Assembly: GCA_963924565.1 (NCBI GenBank) | Contig: OZ004608.1 | Span: 26,040,001 to 26,104,000, forward strand | Length of the DNA: 64,000 bases | Direction: 5' to 3' | Source of the DNA: Ascidiella aspersa | Lineage: Eukaryota | Shown: positions 1-15,000 of the stretch, piece after piece | Layout: each line of letters begins with the position of its first letter | How positions within the stretch are numbered: position 1 is the stretch's first letter | Notes under the pieces: generated by a model | What the model saw: the letters and a program-made list of their open reading frames with translations, nothing else | What the model was told of the DNA's origin: nothing | Database searches by the model: none | Position numbers and translations under genes: made by a program

Positions 1-88
1 TCAGGTCGAGCGGCGTGAAGTGGCGCTTGATGTAGCTGGGCGAGTTTGAGAGTGGTGGGGTGGGGTAGGCCGACGACGGGCTGCCACA
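1..88 (-). CDS. Fox-ZF exon 15 (partial; continues past window edge)
   Basis: atttag acceptor, phase 0; [29 protein letters not shown]; GC3-rich like the other exons. Confidence 0.65.
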
Positions 89-3000
89 CTAAATAAAATA
101 CGAAATGTTAATTTAAACTAAATATTTTTAATTCGAACAAACTTGTATTGCGCGGAAAAAACAAAAAACAAAAAAATAAATAAATAAAAATAAAGAAAAT
201 AATTTAAAAATGTATTGAGTGGTAGTTTTAATTACTTCTACGTCGTTTTATCTCACCTTTAAACATTTTTCTTAACCAATAGCACTTATTTTTAGTTTAA
301 GACGTTATAATGCCTTGTAGACGATTCTTGAATATTTATGTTAAGCAGCAACGAAACACTAAATTACTTGGAAATCGAACCGTGTTTATTCTCCTGAAAA
401 TGCGGCCATGCTTGTTTATCTGTTTTCGCCTTACACGCAGTTCACGATTATGGCGATAAAAGGCCCGTTCCGAGAAAAGAGTTGTTGTTCTCACGATAAT
501 GTAAAAACATTGGCGTAAAATCAACGGGTTTTGGTGGATTAGAAAAGAAAACATTGCCACACACACACACCTCGTCCTCGTTGTACTTGGACGTATATTT
601 CTGCGGCGAACAAGCCTTGTTCGTTCTTGTCGATTCGTTGGTGCTTCTGTAACAAAACCAAAAAAGTTGAATATACATTACAGCATAACAGGGAGATAAA
701 GTAAAATTATATTATAGGTAAATAAGTAAGTATAAGTTAAAGCGTTTATCCAAAGCCATCAACTGTTGATTTTATTTTCATCTTTGGTACAAAATATATT
801 ATAATATTTAAAATGAAACAAAATACTTCGAAATATTTGTGGCAAAAGAGCGTAAAAATTATGTCCCCGCGGATATATCTCGATTGGTATGTAAATGCAA
901 ACAGCGTGCATCGGCGGTGTACGTGCATCGGCAAGATTCCGCCGCTGCTGTATTCAAATCGCGTGCGGGCACGACCGGCGAGCATTAAATCGCACGCGAT
1001 GAACGCATCAAGAAAGCGAAAACGCAAGTCACACAATGCCCGGGGGCGTCGAATTTTCCCAGGGTCGGGTTTTATTCCTGAGCCACAACAAGCTAGGAAA
1101 CCCTGCTCGGCCAACGGGTCTTTATCTCTCTCTCGCTCCCCTCGCCATTTTCCCTTTCTCTTTTTTTGCTCACGACGATCTCTCGCTCCCTTGCCTTCGT
1201 TCAGCGGAGCGCGACCATCGAGATGGCAATCTGAGCCGAGCCGAGCCGATTTCGGCTGCGTAGCGTGCGAACCAACGTAAACAATCCCGGGCTGATTCAG
1301 CCGTGGCTCGCCGTGTGACGACAGAGGCTAGGCGCTCTCGCGTGCGAAGGCCGGCGGATTACGAATCGCCTGATTGTTTACAAACCAACGGCCTGTTTAT
1401 TCGTGAGATCAGGCCCGCGATTCATCAACGGGAAACGGGGAGGGATCTTTTTTGAGCTTCTATGACTTTGCAGTTAAATATAGCGCGCATCCAGTTTTCT
1501 TGTTTTCTTTGCAGAGTAAACACTGAAGCTTTCAATGTTGACCGGTCGCTAATTTTCCGGTTGACGACCTAAGGTCAAATCGTGCACCAAATATTTGCCA
1601 GGGTGTTTTGCGTTTAGAAACATCACAACAGCGTGTTTCAAAAAGTCATACCATTTTTGGTTTATAAAAAGGGCCCGGTATATGCGGACTGTATGGCGCA
1701 ATGTTCATTTTGTTTTTGTTTTTTCTTCGTTTCGTGGTTTTAGATTGGACTACGCCTAAAATCAGCTGTCGAAATAGGGGTGGACGGGTGTAAAACATAA
1801 AGGGGGCCAAAACGAATTTTTTGTCGTCATTTTCTTGTTTTACCCTCTCATAAACTTGCGTTCCCGCTAAGCTCCGATTGATGCGCGACAATAAATAAGG
1901 CCATCGATAAGTGGTGGGGATCAAAGGGCGGAAGGCAGTGCACGACGCGGGAGGCCAAGATCGAAAACGAGCGCCTGCCGTAATCCACAAATCAACACGT
2001 ATCAGGCCGAAAACGAGCAGAGGCCGGCCGCGATCGGAGTGACGTCACAGCGTGTTACAATCTGTTGTGGAATGCGTGCTGTGGCGGTGGCGTCTGCACG
2101 CGATCTCTCGCCCTTCGCTGCCCCGGCTAAACACCTCGATTTCCTCGCGGCGCCGCGCGAATAAGACAATGACTCACTTCAAGCGCAACAACAACACGGA
2201 AAAGGAGGTGTTTTTCTTCTCCACGAAAGCCCCCTCGCCCCCACCGCGCTCCCAGAAGTGGCTCGTAATGGGGAGTCACCGCCATTGTGACGTCGCCGGG
2301 CTGTCAATGTCGCGGTCCAGTGGCCACAGGAAGGACTCTAGGTTATTATCTGACGGGCGCTTCCGTGTTATTGCATGACGGCATGGTCATCTGTCATATT
2401 GTTTGAAGTTGCGGTCAGTCGTGAAACGGAGGCGTGTCCTTATATTTTTGTCGGATAGGCACTTTTAAATTATTTATGCCTCCTATACTCCGAGGCACCT
2501 TAAAATTGGACTGTCTTCATAGGCAAATCGCTTTGATTGTGCGATGACGTGATGGGATTAAGTGTATTCTCAGCCGTTTTCGGTGTCGCGAAAAAAAATA
2601 AACATGACGCGTCTCGTGTTGTGTTTTGCTGACACTCTGCGGAGAGCAGCTGTGTCTACTTACGAAGGCGCCTTTCGAAATAAACGTCCTAAGAAAACAT
2701 CAACAAGGCGCGAGAATGAAATGAATCATTTCTCCGTCTTCCGCTCGGATCAAACGCCACAACTTTTCCTCGCCATCGCTGAACGCGGGCCCTCTCGCAC
2801 GCGTGATCCCAAGTCAACAGCCTTCCGCGAATAGCGCAACCGAAACGGACTGGCTTTTGACGTCACGTTCACACACGCCGCGCAAGTTCAAGCAAGGCGG
2901 CGGCTGCGCGCGCGCACACCGGCGTACACACGCGCGCCCTGCCGGCTTGCACGCGAGCGGCGGCGACGAGAAAGACATATCGCCTCGGAACGTAAACATA

Positions 3001-6000
3001 ACAACAGGCGGTTTTGGTTACAGCGGCCCCGGCGCGGCCTTCTCACGCAACTCGGTCTTGCACGCAAACTCCATATCGCGCCTATAGGCACAAAAGCACC
3101 ATGCCAGGTAAAGGTCAGCTTTGGAGCTGGAGGGAGGAATCAAGCCGGCGCAAATCTCCGACAAGGCGCAATTATCTGGTAATGGCCTCCTTCATTCCGC
3201 GACAACGCGTAGCTTGACACCGCCCTTTGTCTTCACAAAGTCGACCAAGACACTGATTGAATGTTTAACGGGCTTTCGTTCGATTACCGGAACGGAAAAA
3301 ATGTTTGTTGCGGTTTATCCATTTTGCGCATTTTCTCGCGACGGCGACACACCTCTCCAAGAAACAATTCCGTCACTGCAATTAAAAATTTATGAGAGCT
3401 ACGTTCCCCGACCCCTGATGTATGCCAAGTTGACTCGTCCAACTTTAAAGGTCGACTAAAATAAATATTTTAATTTGTCGCGAAAATGAATTATTCCTAG
3501 AAGCGCGTATTTATACACAAATATTAATTATTAATTTGTGTAAGTTTACGTTTGTTTTAGCAAGGGACGGCTTCTTGTTAACACTGCGTGTCCGATATTT
3601 ATTTCTGACTGTGCTTAAAACCTAGTAACGGTCTTTCACTCGAGGAATGTTAAATCGCGACGCAAACACCAAACCGCAAGGACCCTGAATGCGAATCGGC
3701 CAGGAATGGCTAAGCACAAACACCTGTCCGTGGATGAGTCGAGAGAGGCCCGTATAGGAGAGAAAAGGCCCGCGCCGCCTTGTTTTCGCAACTTCGTCAG
3801 GCTAGCACGCGATATGTGCTCCAGCCGCTCGACTCTCTCACGATATGTTTACGTTAGGCTGGGTGTCGCTGCATCGATCAAAACCAGGCCCAAGTCCTCC
3901 AACCACCGACGCCTCCCATGCATTTTGTACTTATCTTGAGCTTCCCGTCGCTACTTCTGCTAATTCGGTGTTTGGCAGCCGATAATAAGCCACAAATCGG
4001 GCCGGAGTGCTTTCGCACGCAATAAACTAGGAGATTCTTTGTAGGCGGTCAGTTGTTTTGGGATATCCTGAGTACGTCACAAAAACGTAACAAGTGTTTT
4101 TAAAGCGTTGTTTGTTTTTTTAATCCGGCCATAGACACATAAATAAAAGTTTGTAGGAAATTGTTTAGTTAAAACAAAATAATTATTGCTATGAAGAAAA
4201 ACCCGTTTATGTTATGCAATATAATAGGATTACTTTGCGGTTCACTTTCATTATTCTCGCGTTAGCTATTGCATTGAAAGTGCGCGAATTCCGCGGCAAA
4301 GGGGGATTAGAATGACAGGAACGTGTTTTTCCGCTTTCCCGTCGCCAACGCCAAAGCCGGCATCAAAACAAGGCCGTGACCTTTGCGCGTAATCAGATCG
4401 CGTTTTCGGCAAAGCAGACTATTAAAAACGCATTGTTTCAAGTCGGCCTGGGCGTCGCACGCAAGCTTAACCGCAGCAGTCATTGTGGCGGTCTGCTTTT
4501 GGCATTTCAAAAGTTGCCGGCTGATCATCTCTTTTCCACATTCAAGTGGCTCTCTTTCTCTCTAATTTTGTTCCTTTTCTCTCTTTTTCGTGTGACGTCA
4601 TCGTTTGGCCACGTAGGCTTCGCTGCAGCGGTCGCTTACAATATTAAAAGCGGAAACATATTGCGCCCGCCGATATTATCGAATTAATTGCCTCTCGCGG
4701 GTTCGGAATTTTTAACTGCGCCAGTTTGCAGCGGAAGGAGTTGATTACAAGGTTGCGAGTTCCAACATATACGAATCGTAATGAATTATCCGCCTGAACG
4801 TGTTTTATTTAATTCTAAGCCATCACAAGAAATGTAAAGATATTTTTTGCTACTTTATATTTCCAAAAGTAAACAAGAAAATGAGGAATGTTTAAATTAC
4901 AAATATAAACGAAATATTTGTTTTAATGATCAACGCGCGCCGGACAATCCTAAACCCTAGAGCACAGCTGGCCAAATCCGGAGCGGCGCAGCACGAGAGA
5001 GAAATAGAGATATATAGTCGTCACAGCTCCGAGGCAGCATCAATCGCGATTAGGCGATGTCCTGGCACGCAAGAAACACTCGGCAACAACACACGGGGCG
5101 AGCAGGTAATCTAAATATACGCACGCGGCATGCATTGCGCCGCGGCCGCAAGGTTCGTGAGAAGCCGGCTGTTGACATGCAGATCGCAGGGCCCCGGGGC
5201 AGCCTTGGAGTCTGGGCCACTCGGACTTCGCGTGCGAGGATTTGCCGCGGCGCCGGCCGCATGTTTATTTTCATGTTACGGCGAAAGCTGCCCGGGCCCG
5301 GCGACCGTCGCACGCGACTGGAAGCTTAGCGCGGCAGGCGGCACGACCGACAGCGGCGTCGGCGGTGGGCGTTTGCCGCGGCCGTCGACCAGATTTCGAA
5401 AAGATATCGGCCACCCCATCAGCCCGCCCATTTATCATGCTTCGCCTACGCATGTCGAAACCTTTAAGAGCAAAGCGAGGGTTAAGCCAGTTTACCCGAG
5501 TAAATAGCAAGGCGCCTCTTCTTTTCTCAGCTATAGATTTTAATGCCTAATCAAAATTAGCCTGATTTAAAACAAAATTAGCCTGATTTGCCGGTAATGC
5601 TAATTCCTTTTGGGTAATTGTGAAAACAGGCCTTCTTGGCCACTAATTTTACCGATACTTTGTGACCGTTTTAACCTGAAGCCAATTTTATCATGCCGGT
5701 TCAATACAAGTGGAGATTTATTTTCCCCGTTGTAAAACGAGCGGGCGTTTGCAGTTTAAATTGCGCACACAACGAGCTGCATAGTTGCGCCATCAGCTGA
5801 CTGCTCGCGTGCGTCGAGTTGTTCTGCGCTTTTTTCGCACTTGAACATCAAAACACTTGTTGACGCTGCAGGCTCGGGTTACAAAAGCACTTTGTAACTT
5901 TTACATTTTGTTCAATAAATAAATTCGAGTTCGTTTTCTGTTCATGTTTTGGTGTATTTTGGTATTTTTGATTAGTTTTTGTAAATGTTGTATTTTACTA

Positions 6001-9000
6001 TTGATTCTATGTTTTGTTATTTCCAACTTTTATTGCAACAAAGCCGAAAACCCTTTAAATAAACACACTCTATTCACGTCTCAGACTATTAATCGTTTGG
6101 AGCTTAGTATAAACACTTTTTGTTAACATATTTTGCCAGACCTCGTTAACGAACGTGAGCTGAAAAGACATAGGTGTGGCGTCGAGTGATTTGCATACAT
6201 TGCCGCGGTTTACATGTCGCCAACTCGTTGCAATGACTTGGCAGAAAATTTCGCCGGCACGATTTTTTCGGTTCAGGGCGGCGCATAGCACAAAATTTCG
6301 CACAAAACATCGCGGATCAGTTCGCTGAACTGCGAAGCATTTCCCGCGGCCGCGTAGAGTTGTTTACCGCCTTCCAGAACGCCACAAGAGCAGAACTACT
6401 GGCGCTGCTGATAAACACGCTTATTATTGTCAAGAACAATCCTCGACGCGGGTGAGTCAACATCGTGGAATTCACGCCAGCCACTGTTCCCATTCCGACC
6501 CATAACAATTACGCCAAACAGAACAACTGTTGACGCGATGGCGAATCGTAAGCGAAAGGGAATTTTTTCGGTGATTGACATTTCACGCGCACTCGAAGAA
6601 TTTGTGCGGAAATCGGCCCTCGTTCTCCCCCTCCCTTTTATTTTTATTTTTTGTGTGCAAAGCTTCGCAAACGCTCAATTAGGAATACGCGCCAGGACAG
6701 GAAATCGTTGCACGGGGCGATTGCCCGCATTCGTGCAAAGCCAACTGGCCGCCAGAAAATGTTGACGTGACCCGCACGGTTCGGACAAAGGTGGAAAGCA
6801 GTAGGCCGATATAGGCAAAAACAACGAGCGGAGACCAATTGCGGAGCCTTGAGAGAAGCGCCCGACGCCAACGAATGAAGAGCACCGTTTGCTGCTGGTT
6901 GCTTTCTCCTTTCGCGCGATGTTTTCGTACCCGGCGGGTCATAAACAAGCGGGCTGTGACATCACAGGGACACGAAGAGCCAACAAGTTTCGCGTGTCTC
7001 CGGCGCTTTTGTTGTCACGCGATCGTTCAAGGCGAGTTTAGCGATCAACAAACAACAAGGAGGCCTTGAGAGGCGGCGATGACGCGGCACCAGCAAGCCG
7101 ACGCAGCTTCGGAACGCTATTTTCGAGATATTTTTAACGCGCAATTGAAATAACCTTATGGAAAATTAAAATCCACTTTAATACGAAATAAGATTTTTTT
7201 TTTGAATATGTAAACTTGTACAACCTCTACACAAGGAAATTAAAGCTTGAAACACAAGCAAGATTATTATCTTCCTCTCACAATGACGTGTATGTTGACG
7301 CCACGCCCCACTGGGCCCCAATCGCCCCCGCCCCCACCCCCAATTGTCGAAGGCCACGCCCTCATTCCCCCCACGTCACTCGCATTCCTGCTTATTGTCA
7401 CAAGAGGGGGCCCCTGATCGCGGTGGGTGGCGAATGTGGGTAGCGCGTGAAAAACGATGAAGGGAGCTTTCGTTGTTTCTCGGCATATGTTTATGTCGCT
7501 CACTTTGTAAGAAGAATGCGTCTTACCGTTTTTTACGCACTTAAATTTAAGCAGATTGTTTACTCAATTTAACAATTCAAATTCTTACAGGAAAACTTTC
7601 GGCCATTGTCTTTGAAATATAATTAGGGAGCAATGACGTTTTGAACTTTTCACCCAAATCTACAAAATTCAATAGAATTTGTACTGCAAATGGTTGAACT
7701 TTGTGACCTAATCCCACGAGAATCGAAAGAAAATCCTACAGATTATGTTCTTACAATATAACATGTAACATATCCGGGGTTACGGCCGGGGCGCAACTCA
7801 ATAGAACCGCCAATCTGCTTAAATCGAGTAAACAGCGTAACGCGACTGGACCTCAAACGTTTACAATCGTCCAATTAATCCCAAGCGGCGCAGTTAAATT
7901 CGCCTGCAACTAATGGCCGGGATCAAAGCGAGCAGTTGTCTTACAGCGGCTCCCGCGGGGACGGGTGCGATCCTAACAACAATCGAAAATACATCACTTA
8001 CAGCACTTCCAAGTTGGGAAGCGAGCTCCTCTCGTCCTTTGCGTCATCGTGTGACGTCATCAGCTTTGTTTGCGAGTGCGTCTTGCGGCAGTGCTGCTCG
8101 AGGCCGTGGATGCCCTTGGCGTGGAAGTCGCACTGGTTGCATTGGTGCTGTAATGTGTTTACATATAAGGTTAAGCGCTGTCGTGTGTCCCACGGGGATG
8201 AAAGCACGGCAGGCTCCGCGCGAGAAAAAGGATTACGCCGATGCGCGGGCGATACGCGCCTCGTCGCCTTGTCTACGAGTTTGTTTGCAGTCGACGACGG
8301 GATCCGGCTAAGTCGGCGACCCGCGAACTTTCGCGACGGTCGCGAAAACGCACACAAGCACAAGATGGGCGTGATCCGCTTTTCGGGCAAAATGACAAAA
8401 CTTGACGCAGCGAGATAAATACATGAACTTAAAGCGAACACTAACCCAGCCGTGAATGTTCTTCTTGGCATCTGACTCCGCTTCCAAACCCGCACTTCTC
8501 CTCAGCTGCGGACTGATGCACGGCGACGAGTTAGGATTTACATCGTTGCCTTTGCAAAAAACAAATATTATTAGCAATGTTTTCGGAACAACGCCGAAAC
8601 CGAGGTTTCAAAATCGCCAGGACAGTTACCTGTGGAAGACGGTCGGTTATCGCTGGAGCTCGATCGTGCGTCCTCCTCGGCCGACTTGGCCTGCGAGAGT
8701 TCGAGAAGCTTCTGCTGGTAGTTCCAGAAGTGCTGTTTTAGTTGCGCGGCCTGGTCGCTCTCGGCGCCTGAAAGCTGCGCGACAGAGCAAGGGTAAAATA
8801 AATAAAAACAGAAAATTGAATTTTATTGCGATGGGCGACAGCACGAACCTGGCGCGGGAAGTTGGGCGAAAATGCGGGGTTTGCCGGCGCGGCGAGGAAG
8901 GAGTTCTGCATTGCCAGCTGCTGGTAGAATAAGCGAAGCTGATCTTGTGAAAGAGAGGCCGACGAAGCTGCGAACGAAGAAATAACATTTAGAGTGCTAA

Positions 9001-12000
9001 ATTCACTTTAAAGAACTTCTTTAAAAATACAGGAGCTGTATATAAATAAGAAAAACAGGTCGATTAAGCAAGGCATTCTTATTTTCACCTGCAGCAGCCT
9101 GTTGCAGCGCAGAGTTGAGCATGTGCTGTCGTTGGACCGCGTAGGCGTCCATTCCGGTCACCCCTGCCTCGTGGCTTGCCGCCGCGGCGTCCCGCTGGTG
9201 CTGCTGTTGTTGTTGCTGTTGCTGCTGTTGTTGCTGCTGTTGTTGTTGCTGTTGTTGTTGCTGTTGTTGTTGCTGCTGATGTTGTTGCTGTTGCTGTACT
9301 TGCTGTGTGAGCGAGCGCATCACCGACTCGTCGAGAAGGCCGGAAGCGAAACTCGCCGAGTAGGGGAAGCCGGAAGTCGGACTTCCTATTAAATAAGACG
9401 AAACGAGGTTTGCAAACATGTGCCACCAGACCACTACTAAACAGCAATTAAATAAAACGACCTTAAGTTTCATTAGGACAAAATGCTCTTTCAAATATTT
9501 TGAAAAGCCTTTATTATTAAGTAATTTCTTTCGGGTTACCTGCTGAAGCGTGCTGGACTGCGGCGAGCATGTTAGATGGGCCGCCCGACACCATGATGGA
9601 ACGCGGGGTGAGACCGGACACCATATTTTGCAGCGACATCAAGCGATCCGAGGTTTCTGCGTAAGATAAACAAAAAGGCTGAACAGGTCGGTCGACAAGG
9701 GTGATTTCCGCTCCTTGTATACCCAAGAAGGCAGCGTTGCCTTCGCGGACTTCGTGTATTTATGCTCATGAATATTTCAGGCCGATTGATTGACGCAGGT
9801 CGCCGCGCAATGAGGACCTTGTCAAAAGGAGCGAGAAAGCACCGCTTGGAAAAGTTATTTAAAGAGAAGCGACGTTTGGCGAGATATCCTAAGGATTAAC
9901 GGAAAAAGCATTTTACTTAAGGATTAATGGGAAAGCACTTTACCTTTCTGGCTGTGGCTGTTCTCTGCATGGGCCTCGTTGTTTGAGTTGGCGACGGCCG
10001 CTGCGACAGCCTTGGCCTTGAGGTTGGTGATCTCAAGCTGATGCATGACCCGGGCATGTTGCTCCAGCAGGGTGGCGCCTGAGCTCACGTAGGTGTACGG
10101 ACAGAAGCGGCAGCGGTAGTGGTGGATGTCCGACGACTCGTAGCGGATCGTAATATTACCACCGATCTACAAGTGAAACGTCGGGTCAATTGCGGTCTTC
10201 AATCGATTTAAAAGTGTCGGTTGGGAGATACTTACGTTGACGCCGTCCACCATCACTGGTGTCTCGTTGCCCGAGTAGCCGTCTTCGCGTCTCTGGCCCT
10301 CGAAGCTGTTCCTCTCCGGCGACGACGTTATGCGTTCCGACGTCAACATGGACGGAAGAACGATTCCGGATTGTGCTGCAAGGCAACAACATATAAGACC
10401 ACGCTCTTCTTTTAAAACCACCGCTATATGCGAATTCTCGTACCCATAAGGCTCTTCTGGGCTGCAGCGATCCAAGGCTGGGTGGAGGTCGGAAGACCAT
10501 CCTCCCTTCGTCTGACTTTCGAGAGCATTGGAGAGTCGATGAGCGCCTTACTAAAGGTGTTGAGAGTCCCTTGCATGTCCTCAACCGACGACAGAGAGTT
10601 TGGGCGTTTTCCATCGTCGTTGTTCATTGCTGTAAAAAGTAATCGTAAAAGTTAGGACTTATCCTCGCCAACCAAAAATGTTATTTCATAGACGCGAAAA
10701 CCGATAGCAAGGGTTTCGGCGATCGGCCAAGGTTGTTAATATAAAAGCGCGATTAGCAGAGTAAGGAACGCGAAATATACGCGCTATTGGAGTTGTTTTC
10801 TACGAGCCAAGATCTGTTTTTACCCTGGAGGAAATTTACTCAAGCCCCGGCTCAGGGTACAAGACATGTTCGGGAGTGTCAACGTAGCACAGTGTACGTT
10901 TTGTGTGACTGAAACCAACGCAAAATGCGAAACCGGGACTGGGGCAGTTTCGTCTGTCGTCACGACTGAGCCATGTAAGTGTGACAGTTGTGGTTACACA
11001 GAGGCGCGTGCGATTGAATCGCCGTGACGTCAGGCGCGTCCGGTGAACGCTTCCGGGTCAGCTACTGCCGCTGGTAGCGGTTGCGTCATAAAACGGTCAG
11101 TGATAAACAAATGTTTACGCGTTTTGTTTGCTAGCGCGCGCATTAGTTTGTAATGCGCCTCTTAATGTGATGACGATGGTGACTAAGCGCTGTCGCTGGA
11201 CAACAGATGTTGTCGCGATGATCTGTTGCCAATCTGGTAGGCCCACGCATGTCGTATAGAGGTGCACAATGCGCATCAAAACAGCAGCTACAATTTTTAG
11301 CATAAATACCCGCCCACAGGTACAAGACAGATCTAAAGCAAACATATACAACAACCAAGTAAACGAAGGTAATTGAACTATCAAGTACGAACCCAAGTTA
11401 GGTCCTTCCCCTTGCTTTAAAATCATCATCCTCGGATGCTTAGCGAGATCTTTTTCCGGGGGGCTCTGCGATCGCTTCCTGGCCTTGGCCCTGGGGTCCT
11501 CGACCGCGTGGTAGGCGCCATCGCCCTGCTGCCAGCCCATGGCTGACATGGCCATCAACTGCGGGGGGAAAGCCGCCATCGGATAGAGGCCGCTGGATGT
11601 CGCCACGTGCCCTTCGTTGGCGCCGGCGCCGGGGTTCGGGGGGTTGTGCCGGTTGGCTTCCTCCTGGTGGCTGGCCTTGCTCTTTCGACCTCCGCTTCCT
11701 GGAGGACGCAAGGGATTATTAGTTGGAACAATGGGAATTGTAAAGTTGGACGCAAACACGGCGCTTTGTAGGAAAGCTTTCGCCGCGTCGGCCTTGGTTG
11801 AAAACAATTTCCACGTAACAGAATATCATTAGGAAGCGGGCGATTATCAATCAGGCGAGACAAGACACACCGCCCAGGCTGGGCCGCGCGCGAATCAATC
11901 ACCAATCTGCGTCGGAAACTTTCCTTGGTCGGTAATTAACACGACGGCAAAATAAAACCTGCAAACAGCCAATAGGCCAAGAAAAAAGCCTTATAATATA

Positions 12001-15000
12001 CATATTCGTTGGGAAGCCTTTTTTACCTTCGTTCTGCTGGTATTTCTTCGCCTTGTAAGCGGAGATAGGGGCAAGGGCGGCGCCGCGTCGCCTCCTCCTT
12101 TTGAAGCTGTTTTCGTTGCCGAACTCCCCAAATCCCTCGCGGGTCATGGTCCAGTAGTTGGACTTGGCCGCGTTCTCGTATCGTGGAACTAAACAACGGG
12201 TAAAAAAAACACAAATTAACAGTGATATAAGGCGTCGAAGCAAACATATTTAACCGACATGTAATGTGCGAAAAGTGTAAATATGCTTTGTACACTTTAG
12301 GCAAAATATCTTGCGTATATAGGTACTCTTTTGTTAGTATTCAAAGGGGGGTATGTATAAACCTGCAGCGTTCGACTTTTATGCCTAAGTCCGATGAAAT
12401 TTCCCGCCGTGTCTTCGCAAAATCGTCGCCGCCACCGCGGGACTACAATATAGGAAGAAACGTCGCTTAATCAGCGCGCTAGGATCGGAAAAGGCCCTGG
12501 CAAGCGTTGTAATTGGATCCAGCCATTGATCAAGTGGGACGCGGGCCGGAGTGCCAGCGCTCGTTAGTTAGCGCAGACAGGAGCGGGGAAGCAGCTTTCC
12601 TCGCAACAACAGGGCTGCACTTGTTTGTGCCACTTCGGGAGTCGCACCGGCGTTCAAATAAAGTATTCGAACACGGCCCGAACCCCATCAACGGCTAAAA
12701 ATTACATTTTTTACTTCTACTGACGCACGATAAACGACACACAGATCACTTATATGCGTTATACGTTGATGAATATTATCGCTTTAAATGCAACTAAAAG
12801 TGACCCGCATTGTCGCAACCTATGGGCGAATCGTTCTGATAGCGAATATGCACACGTTTCGCGCGAACATTGTGCACAGTATACGTAAGTATGTGTTCGG
12901 TTAATTCATTGGCCCGCTTCATACAAGAACTGGTTTTTCCTGGAGTTCGGAGTCGCCTTCTGGGAACGTTGCATTGTGCTCGGAGCCATCAGCGATTATC
13001 GTGTAACAGGCGCGATGCGTGGTGCCGCTTGTTATCGGGCTGCGCTTTGTGCTGCATTTTAATCGCTTCTGGTTTTTATAACACGTAACCGCCGCGGCGG
13101 ATGCGGCGCGAGCGATCGAAGCATTCACTACAGAGCACCTGGATTTCTATTTACACAGATGCATTTTTATGTCGTAGTTTATAAACACCGATCACAATCC
13201 CTAAATATTATAATGGGAATAAAAACAACGTAACTCACCTTTGACAAAGCACTGGTTGAGACTGAGATTGTGACGAATCGAGTTCTGCCAGGCGGACTTG
13301 TCGTGGCAGTACTTGTAGTAGGGAAAGTTGTTCATGATGTAGTCGTAGATACCGCGTAAGGTGATCAGCTTGCCAGGGCTATCGAGGATGGCGGACGCGA
13401 TCAGGGCCGGGTAGGTGTGGGGTGGTCGCTTGTACTGGGAACGTTCCTCGGGCGAGGGGCTGCTTGGGGGCATACGGTTCTGTGGTCCCCCTGACCCGAT
13501 GATGCCCCGAGCGGCTGTGTGGAATCCGTTGGGGGCGGGGCGGTCCTCTGAGGGCTTTGCGGCCGCCTGTAACTTGTAGTTAGGTACCATGCCTGGAATT
13601 GGCGCTGTCGTGGCGCAGCTGGTTTGGATCATCGTTGGCAAGCACATTCCAGCCGCCATTGCGGCGATCGCTGTCGACTGGCTGCTGTTTATTGCGCTGT
13701 ACGGATTCACCGGGTAACCCGGCGCCGACGTCATCGAGTTGGGGGTGGGAAACGGCGGGGCCGTGTTCTCCCCTGGTGAAGCGCCGCCTTTGTTGGACGC
13801 CACCGCGCTGGCCCGCAAGGCCACGTTCATGTCGTCACTGTGACGTCGGTCCGAAGCGATGATTGAGTTCGCTGTCGCCTGTTGCATGGCTTCGGAGGAT
13901 AGCGAGCGCTTGAGTGGCATCGAAGGGTCGTACCTGGGTTCTACTTCGGGGTTACTTTGTGGAGAGATCTTTACGAAAGGCTCGGGGCTGTGGGCTGATC
14001 CCGCCCCGTCTGATATATTGTCATCTGCTCTCTCGTTGCTGTATAAGCTTCCTGTTGATTCGACCGACCCGATGGGGGTATTTGACCCAGCTTTGGGGCT
14101 GTGGTGGTGACCCATGGGCATGGTTTCGTGCATGTCAATCATGCTCTCTGCTGTAGTTTTGTCTGTTCGTTTTGCTTTCAACACTCGCCGCAAAACAAAG
14201 TCTAAGCTCTTACTGCTCTTGCTTTGGGTAATGTCTTCCTCAGCAGGGATTTGTTGAATTCGGCGGGGTTTCGAAGTACTTTTGCGCCGCCGTGATTCGG
14301 ATTTTTGCCGTTCCTTGTTCGTTGCGTTGTACTTTTGAAGCTCGTCTAGATCTACCAGGCAATAAAATAATGATTTCTGCTTATGGTAAACCTAAATAAC
14401 CTTTAAAATTACATAACAAATTTATAGCTTTTTCACTAACACTTAGGAAACAGAACCTGGGCGGCACAGCGGCCGTCTCTCTCCAGACTGCGAACTTCGG
14501 TGCGCCGCCTCAAGTTTATATAAACACGGGCGAAAAACTTTTTTCCGCGTCAGAAAACTTCGCGTGTGTAGGCTCCACACGCAAACGTAAACCAACAAGA
14601 CACCGGCTGGCGTGTTTAGCTTAGAGCTTGCACGCGATGGCCCACATAACACCGTAATTAGAGTGGCGCTTCATCATACACGCGGTTTGCCTCTCTAGCC
14701 GTTAGTTTGGCTCCGCCTCACGCCAGATTTAACCTTAACACGCGAGGCTCGTTTTTTCCGCAGGTCGGTTTTTCATCGCGCAAGTACAATTGACACCTGC
14801 GTTAATGACACCCGCTTAACTCAAGTTTAATTATTTCCATGAGCAGCTCCGTCGTTCGCACGAAAATCGAGGCGAATTTACATTTCTTATTTCGGCAGGG
14901 GCTTTTAAATATAGACTAAACCCAAATTCAAGCTTTGTCGCTTTAAAGCTCAAAACAAGAGGCTGTGCCCTGCGTCACATATACATGGGAAAATACACCG

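Follow-up and report, generated by a model that had tools for sequence, protein, structure and literature searches.

Fox classes are defined by the forkhead domain plus a few partner domains, such as the FHA domain in FoxK and the finger and zipper in FoxP. Ascidians serve as models of chordate gene networks, and orphan Fox genes are used there without a biochemical description; in Ciona the tunicate-specific ones are named Foxtun1-4 in the literature. As for dimerising zinc finger proteins, Ikaros and Hunchback associate via their C-terminal fingers, and Ikaros binds CtBP through the motif PEDLS (PMC5393059). Here we describe a gene on the minus strand of a 64,000-nucleotide stretch of Ascidiella aspersa DNA (contig OZ004608.1, positions 26,040,001 to 26,104,000; the whole stretch is called the window below), in which an earlier note, made from the sequence alone, had seen an orphan Fox factor with a forkhead domain followed by a C2H2 zinc finger, a glutamine-rich (Q-rich) run and a second finger. 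The window very probably holds most of one ascidian gene, the orthologue of a single-copy Fox family, for which we propose the role of a dimeric, CtBP-recruiting repressor.

The exons were derived from the three minus-frame translations of positions 7900-14500 and from direct reading of the DNA (Table 1). Twelve exons spanning 14351..8002 have canonical AG/GT borders, and their phases share one frame with no stop codon; the 13 window exons checked all have canonical splice sites and compatible phases and are stop-free. The parts of the gene follow each other as a 5' exon, which was not located, the block 14351..8002, a micro-exon (646..571) and a terminal exon leaving the window, and with the 5' exon included the gene has at least 16 exons. 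The first two bases of exon 2 finish a codon started in an upstream exon, its frame is open from 14391, and it carries the motif MIDMHE at 14142 together with the first 64 forkhead residues. Since the frame 5' of the ATG at 14142 (the RRRK... segment) is conserved in the orthologous locus L002 and in the Ciona and Clavelina models, the true start is placed 5' of 14351, in a separate exon, for which eight ATG..GT candidates were considered and none proved convincing. The acceptor of exon 4 was set at 11698 because of the alignment to the Phallusia protein P0267. Each window exon was analysed singly, with natural orthologous proteins as full-length proxies. The encoded protein runs from the RRRK..KPRRI motif through a long disordered region to the forkhead domain, finger 1, helical Q-rich linkers, finger 2, PLDLS and a terminal finger pair, and the order forkhead, finger 1, Q-rich run, finger 2 given in the earlier note is confirmed.

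Relatives were sought by a word search with the forkhead exon, an exhaustive search and a second word search, the names being looked up afterwards. The search with the forkhead exon returned approximately 13 fragments of open reading frames (ORFs) spanning the whole exon at 40-56% identity, further ORF fragments over the forkhead part alone at 60-86%, and in the next tier, at about 87 bits, FoxG/slp proteins. Scores are at least 208 bits inside the family and at most 97 bits for any other Fox protein. All named family members are ascidians: Ciona savignyi (H2Y9G3, 1019 amino acids (aa)), Ciona intestinalis (the cDNA-derived NP_001071789 / BAE06610 / Q4H317, called 'transcription factor protein', 1039 aa; XP isoforms of 1071-1154 aa), Clavelina lepadiformis (LOC143458611, 1098-1210 aa), Phallusia mammillata (the transcriptome-derived A0A6F9DCI1, auto-named 'Forkhead box protein I1', 1080 aa) and Styela clava (LOC120337500, 1374-1375 aa). 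The gene is that of an ascidian with Phallusia as a close relative.

That the parts belong to one mRNA follows mainly from the Ciona cDNA and Phallusia transcript proteins, which span them. The Ciona cDNA-derived protein P0317 carries in one chain the forkhead (residue 213), finger 2 (814), PLDLS (916) and the terminal pair (948), and the transcript-derived Phallusia P0267 aligns exon by exon at 54-93% identity (local alignments); the values reach 72% for exon 2 (54% against L002, local match), and for exon 3 90-95% against Phallusia, Ciona and Styela and 96% against L002. The RefSeq models of Styela and Clavelina have the identical order of parts. Exon by exon, the conserved blocks follow each other on a single strand as they do in P0130, P0136 and P0267, and the gene is single-copy in this genome. 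In addition, the orthologous locus L002/L001 (the best relative, from JGI metagenome data) matches all window exons without change of order or strand at 30-96% aa identity; the local matches amount to 78% at finger 1 and 44-47% at finger 2, and the introns are unmatched. The differences between the window and the data of other individuals, 13 of them intronic and nine exonic, include seven synonymous and two non-synonymous ones; the latter two sit in unconserved linkers, and all three indels are intronic. The synonymous excess of 7:2 and the restriction of indels to introns fit selection on the chosen frames. Together with the conserved exon order, the finger ligands kept in the orthologues and the predicted fold of finger 2, these differences put the observation beyond chance. 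It had been feared that annotation could miss or split the gene. In the bacterial-style ORF track finger 1 is indeed cut, the ORF 9924..10088 beginning after its Cys pair, and finger 2 is buried in an otherwise intronic ORF of 165 aa, only 48 of them exonic; the RefSeq, Ensembl and transcriptome models of five ascidians nevertheless keep the parts in one protein.

Some by-products of the searches deserve mention. L001 (Ga0210059_1001796) and L002 (JGI24158J21664_10001227) are metagenome contigs of 28-33 kb that hold a complete ascidian orthologue, and they are host DNA within microbial community data. High scorers from Schistocerca and Procambarus were rejected as orthologues, being predicted proteins in which two to eight forkhead domains stand in tandem. 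Among these arrays of domains, the locust proteins P0131, P0132 and P0134 and the ENA protein P0133 have 4 to 8 near-identical tandem forkhead domains per chain; annotation may have merged tandem gene arrays in P0131-P0134, unless these are genuine multi-forkhead proteins.

A complete forkhead domain (PF00250) is split over exons 2 and 3. Its N-part (helices 1-3, 13239..13431) matches Pfam PF00250 with E 1.7e-25 over profile positions 1-63 of 88 (residues 238-301 of window:13240-14142), and the orthologues match positions 1-87 (Phallusia 1-82) with 103-109 bits. Against chains of the PDB the orthologue forkhead scores 98 bits with FOXC2, 97 with FOXG1, 96 with FOXD3 and 92 with FOXL2, then 69-77 with FOXK/FOXA, 60 with FOXN3 and 47-56 with FOXP1-4; identity to the FoxC/FoxG/FoxD/FoxL/FoxI classes is 48-57% across the domain. 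By these scores the forkhead is of the FoxC/G/D/L type and distant from FoxP, a class to which the earlier note had likewise not assigned it, and Pfam FOXP-CC is lacking from the orthologues. The forkhead signature of the family is identical in the window.

The class was further examined with a tree of 37 forkhead domains, among them nine from the family, five from Fox loci in this genome, others from named FoxG/slp, FoxD, FoxC and FoxL proteins, and a fungal outgroup; the Phallusia forkhead, identical in the exon-2 part, represents that of the window. The family forms a clade with support of 100/100, and its stem is very long. Neither the FoxG/slp clade (96/99), to which a FoxG-like gene of Styela itself belongs, nor the FoxD clade, with L007 of this genome among its members, contains the family. 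The orphan Fox lineage put forward earlier is thus upheld by a 100/100 clade outside FoxG/slp and FoxD, the named members of which are all ascidian; the orphan status is well supported with respect to FoxP, FoxG and FoxD, and with respect to the remaining classes only provisionally. No match could be established between the gene and Foxtun1-4 or any numbered 'orphan Fox', and the orthologous proteins bear no class name in databases.

The sole neighbour of the family in the tree is L008, with support of 80/34 and flagged as long branches meeting. L008 looks FoxI-like. The gene might be no orphan at all; it would then belong to a canonical class, FoxI being the likeliest, as a tunicate orthologue that evolved fast and gained its fingers later. 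The join to L008, the automatic name 'Forkhead box protein I1' of the Phallusia protein and the composition of the tree, which leaves out the classes A, B, E, F, H, J, K, M, N, O and Q, speak for such a descent, which we nonetheless regard as unlikely: the join is weak and of the kind in which long branches meet, the genome retains a cluster of three Fox matches at C2:33.2 Mb that includes the FoxI-like L008 itself, and the stem of the family is very long, the scores falling from at least 208 to at most 97 bits. As for another canonical class, Ciona FoxQ2III (PMC12828049) is a different gene. The identity with FoxQ2III was considered and rejected on the supplement of that paper, in which FoxQ2III is a gene of 210 aa. 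The three Fox-domain matches lie within 46 kb at G000:C2:33216426-33262325, on the same contig as the gene and 7 Mb from it.

Transcription in this species was followed in one RNA run of the same species label, of which about 6% was read and 24 reads were placed, with a threshold of three reads per junction. The reads are all oriented as expected for a minus-strand gene. Two junctions were recovered, 13239/12188 (the GT..AG intron inside the forkhead domain, three reads) and 8849/8774 (four reads), and the finger-1 exon is covered by reads at a depth of 1.06 on the strand of the gene. The earlier note had named spliced reads joining exons 2-13 as support; neither of these two junctions links the forkhead to the fingers. 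In this species the link between forkhead and fingers is thus drawn from the proteins of other species and from the collinear locus.

The same data could be read as two adjacent genes, a short Fox gene ending after the forkhead and a downstream zinc-finger gene, with the models of other species being read-through artefacts. No read runs on from exon 3 into the exons after it, splicing to an alternative acceptor at 11794-11793 would lead, in the DNA as read, to a stop 24 codons on, and a short family member exists (P0025, 405 aa) that has the forkhead and the terminal pair only. Two genes are nevertheless very improbable here, as the Ciona cDNA and Phallusia transcript proteins cover both parts, all exon phases fit one frame without requiring a start codon or a promoter-like break, and conservation extends to the linker exons that separate the forkhead from finger 1; even P0025 couples a forkhead to fingers. 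A FoxP derivative whose finger moved C-terminal of the forkhead is hardly tenable and, on these comparisons, is refuted at the level tested: the two share RPP.TY..LI..AI..SP at the domain start (sequence reading) and C2H2 fingers, and FoxP1/2 bind CtBP, yet FOXC/G/D/L chains reach 92-98 bits where FOXP chains stay at 47-56, a non-FoxP type is seen in helix 3 and in the basic wing, no orthologue has FOXP-CC and a canonical FoxP is found on another contig. Indeed, Pfam FOXP-CC (PF16159) was found neither in the window exons nor in the eight orthologues, and its only match in this genome is at C4:13056565, on another contig; the real FoxP of this genome is a separate gene. The idea of a FoxP-like toolkit assembled in reverse order is likewise not supported. 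The polyQ run is absent from all orthologues, including the closest, that of Phallusia, the isolated fingers are unlike the FoxP finger with its zipper, and the terminal exon adds two fingers of another type and PLDLS.

The range covered by the earlier note (14351 to 8002) ends before the 3' end of the gene, and both PLDLS and the Ikaros-like pair lie outside it. The TAA at 8000-7998 is part of a GTAAGT donor of consensus type, which comes after base 8002. Past finger 2 the orthologues have a conserved block and then a nearly invariant finger pair. The linker segments of Phallusia and of Ciona match best at one and the same place, 648-571, where a probable micro-exon would join exon 13 (phase 2) to the terminal exon (phase 0) and thereby restore the frame. 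The intron 647-8001 measures 7355 bases, against 68-1050 for the other introns of the gene, and no convincing coding ORF was seen in it on either strand. The genome search placed the terminal exon at C2:26039732-26040076, starting at window base 88; beyond the window it has 405 more coding bases and a stop codon (G000:C2:26039594-26040088 = L005 1363-1857). The part outside the window encodes the paired fingers RTCKHCSVIFGDEMMHALHMSCHDKCDPFRCTICGQNCHEKYYFNVHLLRGLHQ, followed by the stop, and the identity of the exon to Phallusia is 79-82%. As an observation on its own, retention of the intron after exon 13 would make the protein stop two codons on, at the TAA 8000-7998, without PLDLS and the terminal pair, and a short isoform of this kind is possible.

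The terminal pair, C.HC.V.FGD..MHALHMSCHD...PF.C.ICGQ.C.EKYYFNVHLLRGLH, is nearly unchanged in 9/9 orthologues with a C-terminus. Three other loci of this genome, L012-L014, carry a similar pair at 30-44% identity (E 1e-14 to 3e-15). Each of these pairs ends a last exon, and two of the three loci have ordinary C2H2 fingers upstream. L012-L014 are probably genes of the Ikaros, Pegasus or Hunchback type. A word search with the terminal pair of P0025, which depends on shared words of five residues, returned the query alone. An Atlas feature search with the stored Ciona savignyi orthologue returned Ikaros and Pegasus clusters among the neighbours, and the best generic finger pair of the PDB against the terminal pair is that of SALL4, at 32 bits. 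A resemblance of the terminal pair to the Ikaros/Hunchback dimerisation type is suggested by these matches as a lead of moderate strength, and the products of L012-L014 could be dimerisation partners.

The other two fingers are isolated. Finger 1 has the form C-x2-C-x14-H-x4-H and finger 2 C-x2-C-x12-H-x4-H. The Cys/His ligands of finger 1 are kept in 8/8 orthologues having the finger, and its exon is 78% identical to L002 and 76% to Phallusia; the finger 2 motif QC..C.F.AKG.HGL..H.R..H is kept in 7/7 orthologues having that finger. In Pfam the finger 1 exon gives weak zf-C2H2_4 and ZNF462-type matches (E 0.01) and the finger 2 exon weak ZFHX3/ZHX/ZN142-type matches. Such sub-threshold scores are usual for single C2H2 fingers. 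In a whole-protein AlphaFold model built on eight orthologues, finger 2 takes a beta-beta-alpha fold with a block-mean predicted local distance difference test (pLDDT) of 75-85, finger 1 a hairpin and a long helix with pLDDT 55-67, and the forkhead has pLDDT 57-69.

Between the fingers lies the Q/H run, 34 residues of which 32 are Q, in mixed CAG/CAA codons. A run of at least 10 Q was not present in any of 14 family proteins, L002 and Phallusia have nothing of it at the corresponding position, and Ciona, Clavelina and Styela lack it as well; the run is an expansion private to this species. At 9190-9304 the RNA reads and the contigs of other individuals break at the CAG/CAA run, the assembled length of which may be uncertain or variable between individuals. 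PLDLS fits the PxDLS consensus of CtBP binding and occurs in six sequences (window, Phallusia, both Ciona species, Clavelina and P0266). The basic motif RRRK-x3-KPR(R/K)I would be either a nuclear localisation signal or an off-consensus motif resembling that of NuRD interaction. Published NuRD-interaction motifs follow RRKQxxP when N-terminal and RK(x)xxPxK/R when internal (PMC11602157). A NuRD-interaction motif proper was rejected, the RK-x4-P spacing being one residue too long.

Table 1. Positions of the gene parts in the window, and of the loci elsewhere in this genome that carry a similar finger pair (L012-L014, contig in brackets)
Feature	Position	Strand	Content	Borders and support
Basic motif RRRK-x3-KPR(R/K)I	14257..14292	minus		In window, C. 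intestinalis, Clavelina, P0266, P0268
Exon 2	14351-13239	minus	N-terminal region and forkhead N-part	AG/GT borders, phase
Exon 3	12188-12027	minus	Forkhead C-part (12188..12088) ending SFKRRRRR; basic tail	RNA joint 13239/12188
Exon 4	11698-11393	minus	Linker with conserved block	Borders, phase, collinear L002 match
Exon 5	10629-10444	minus	Linker with conserved block	L002 and Phallusia matches, borders/phase
Exon 6	10375-10236	minus	Linker	L002 and Phallusia matches, borders/phase
Exon 7	10166-9944	minus	Finger 1 (10118..10041), then predicted long helix	
Exon 8	9656-9540	minus	Linker with conserved block	L002 and Phallusia matches, borders/phase
Exon 9	9385-9089	minus	Conserved block and Q/H run (9296..9195)	
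Exon 10	8967-8849	minus	Linker with conserved block	RNA joint 8849/8774, L002 and Phallusia matches
Exon 11	8774-8630	minus	Linker, predicted helix	RNA joint 8849/8774, L002 and Phallusia matches, AlphaFold
Exon 12	8549-8446	minus	Linker ending KKNIHGW	L002 and Phallusia matches, borders/phase
Exon 13	8147-8002	minus	Finger 2 (8141..8076)	Phase-2 GTAAGT donor at end
Micro-exon (probable)	646-571	minus	76 bases, 25 codons	AG 648-647, GT 570-569; phase 2 in, 0 out
Terminal exon	88..1, then off window	minus	PLDL at 13..2	
L012	5893-6567 (C9)		Paired fingers C.HC...F.D..M...H.GCH....F.C..CG......F..H...G.H	
L013	6071-6955 (C3)		Paired fingers, same pattern	
L014	6069-7280 (C4)		Paired fingers, same pattern	

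Taken together, the parts suggest how the protein might act. The forkhead domain would bind DNA, PLDLS would recruit the corepressor CtBP, and the terminal finger pair would serve for homo- or hetero-dimerisation, on the model of Ikaros, Hunchback and TRPS1; the isolated fingers could be protein-contact modules, and the whole protein would be a dimeric sequence-specific repressor. If this is true, the protein could homodimerise or pair with tunicate Ikaros-like factors, of which there are three such loci in this genome.

A number of observations weigh against this picture. No read joins the forkhead exons to the finger exons among the 24 reads from about 6% of one run, and the micro-exon and the preceding 7.36-kb intron are without RNA support. 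The Ikaros-like label of the terminal pair comes from its likeness to Ikaros and Hunchback sequences, from L012-L014 and from the Atlas search; in the Atlas embedding search BCL11A and ZNF423 score equally high, the PDB has no Ikaros C-terminal finger pair, and the terminal exon gave no Pfam match. Styela lacks PLDLS, as do the deeper-branching members P0268 and P0269, and a Q-rich region could equally indicate activation. The AlphaFold model has a mean pLDDT of 36.7, which fits a mostly disordered protein; its confidence is low outside the forkhead domain and the fingers, and the terminal pair reaches just 47-55.

A wider claim can be made only tentatively, and we hold it to be rather doubtful: that this is the only forkhead lineage with a dimerisation pair of the Ikaros/Hunchback/TRPS1 type and a CtBP motif, both gained by exon shuffling early in tunicates, and that it constitutes an undescribed Fox class. 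The question of orthology to an already described Fox class has a divided answer. The same architecture is catalogued in Ciona (BAE06610/NP_001071789), and we found no paper citing the family accessions or describing the architecture as a class. The family is already in public annotation, and the Ciona gene was cloned in 2005 as a cDNA; the newness is accordingly modest and consists in recognising the architecture. A FoxC/G/D/L-type forkhead joined to four C2H2 fingers, one pair of them Ikaros/Hunchback-like, would be a case of domain shuffling among developmental regulators, and a dimerising pair would add a second, independent route to Fox dimerisation.

Compared with known systems, the gene is closest to its orthologues in Ciona, Phallusia, Clavelina and Styela, which have the same order of MIDxHE, forkhead, finger 1, finger 2, PLDLS (where present) and terminal pair and the same phase-1 intron inside the forkhead domain. 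The forkhead is 92-100% identical among the named family members, and between Phallusia and the window identity is 100% in the N-part and 90% in the C-terminal exon. The orthologues differ in that the 34-residue Q/H run is found in this genome only, the linkers diverge and Styela is without PLDLS. With FoxP the gene shares the combination of a Fox protein with C2H2 fingers; FoxP1/2 are Q-rich and CtBP-binding, and FoxP dimerises and often represses. FoxP itself, however, has one finger and a leucine zipper (FOXP-CC) N-terminal of a shortened forkhead, whereas here a full-length forkhead of the FoxC/G/D/L type is followed by four C-terminal fingers, FOXP-CC is missing and the polyQ is not conserved. 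The classes FoxC, FoxG, FoxD, FoxL and FoxI resemble the family in the helix 3 sequence and in a wing that ends in a basic RRRRR tail; they differ in having no fingers, and the family has its own signature with a two-residue insert.

The N-terminal basic stretch, with R-K and then K-P-R, recalls the NuRD motif of FOG-1, SALL, BCL11A and ZNF512B, the spacing here being RK-x4-P. Ikaros resembles the gene in having a PxDLS-type CtBP motif upstream of the pair (PMC5393059). Like the gene, Ikaros, Hunchback and TRPS1 carry a C2H2 pair in their last exon, and ligand spacing and linker agree. They differ from the gene in the DNA-binding domain, which here is a forkhead and not a C2H2 array or a GATA finger; dimerisation of the present protein is predicted, and the likeness was tested against L012-L014. 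TRPS1 couples its pair to a different kind of DNA-binding domain and to isolated fingers, as is also the case in this gene.

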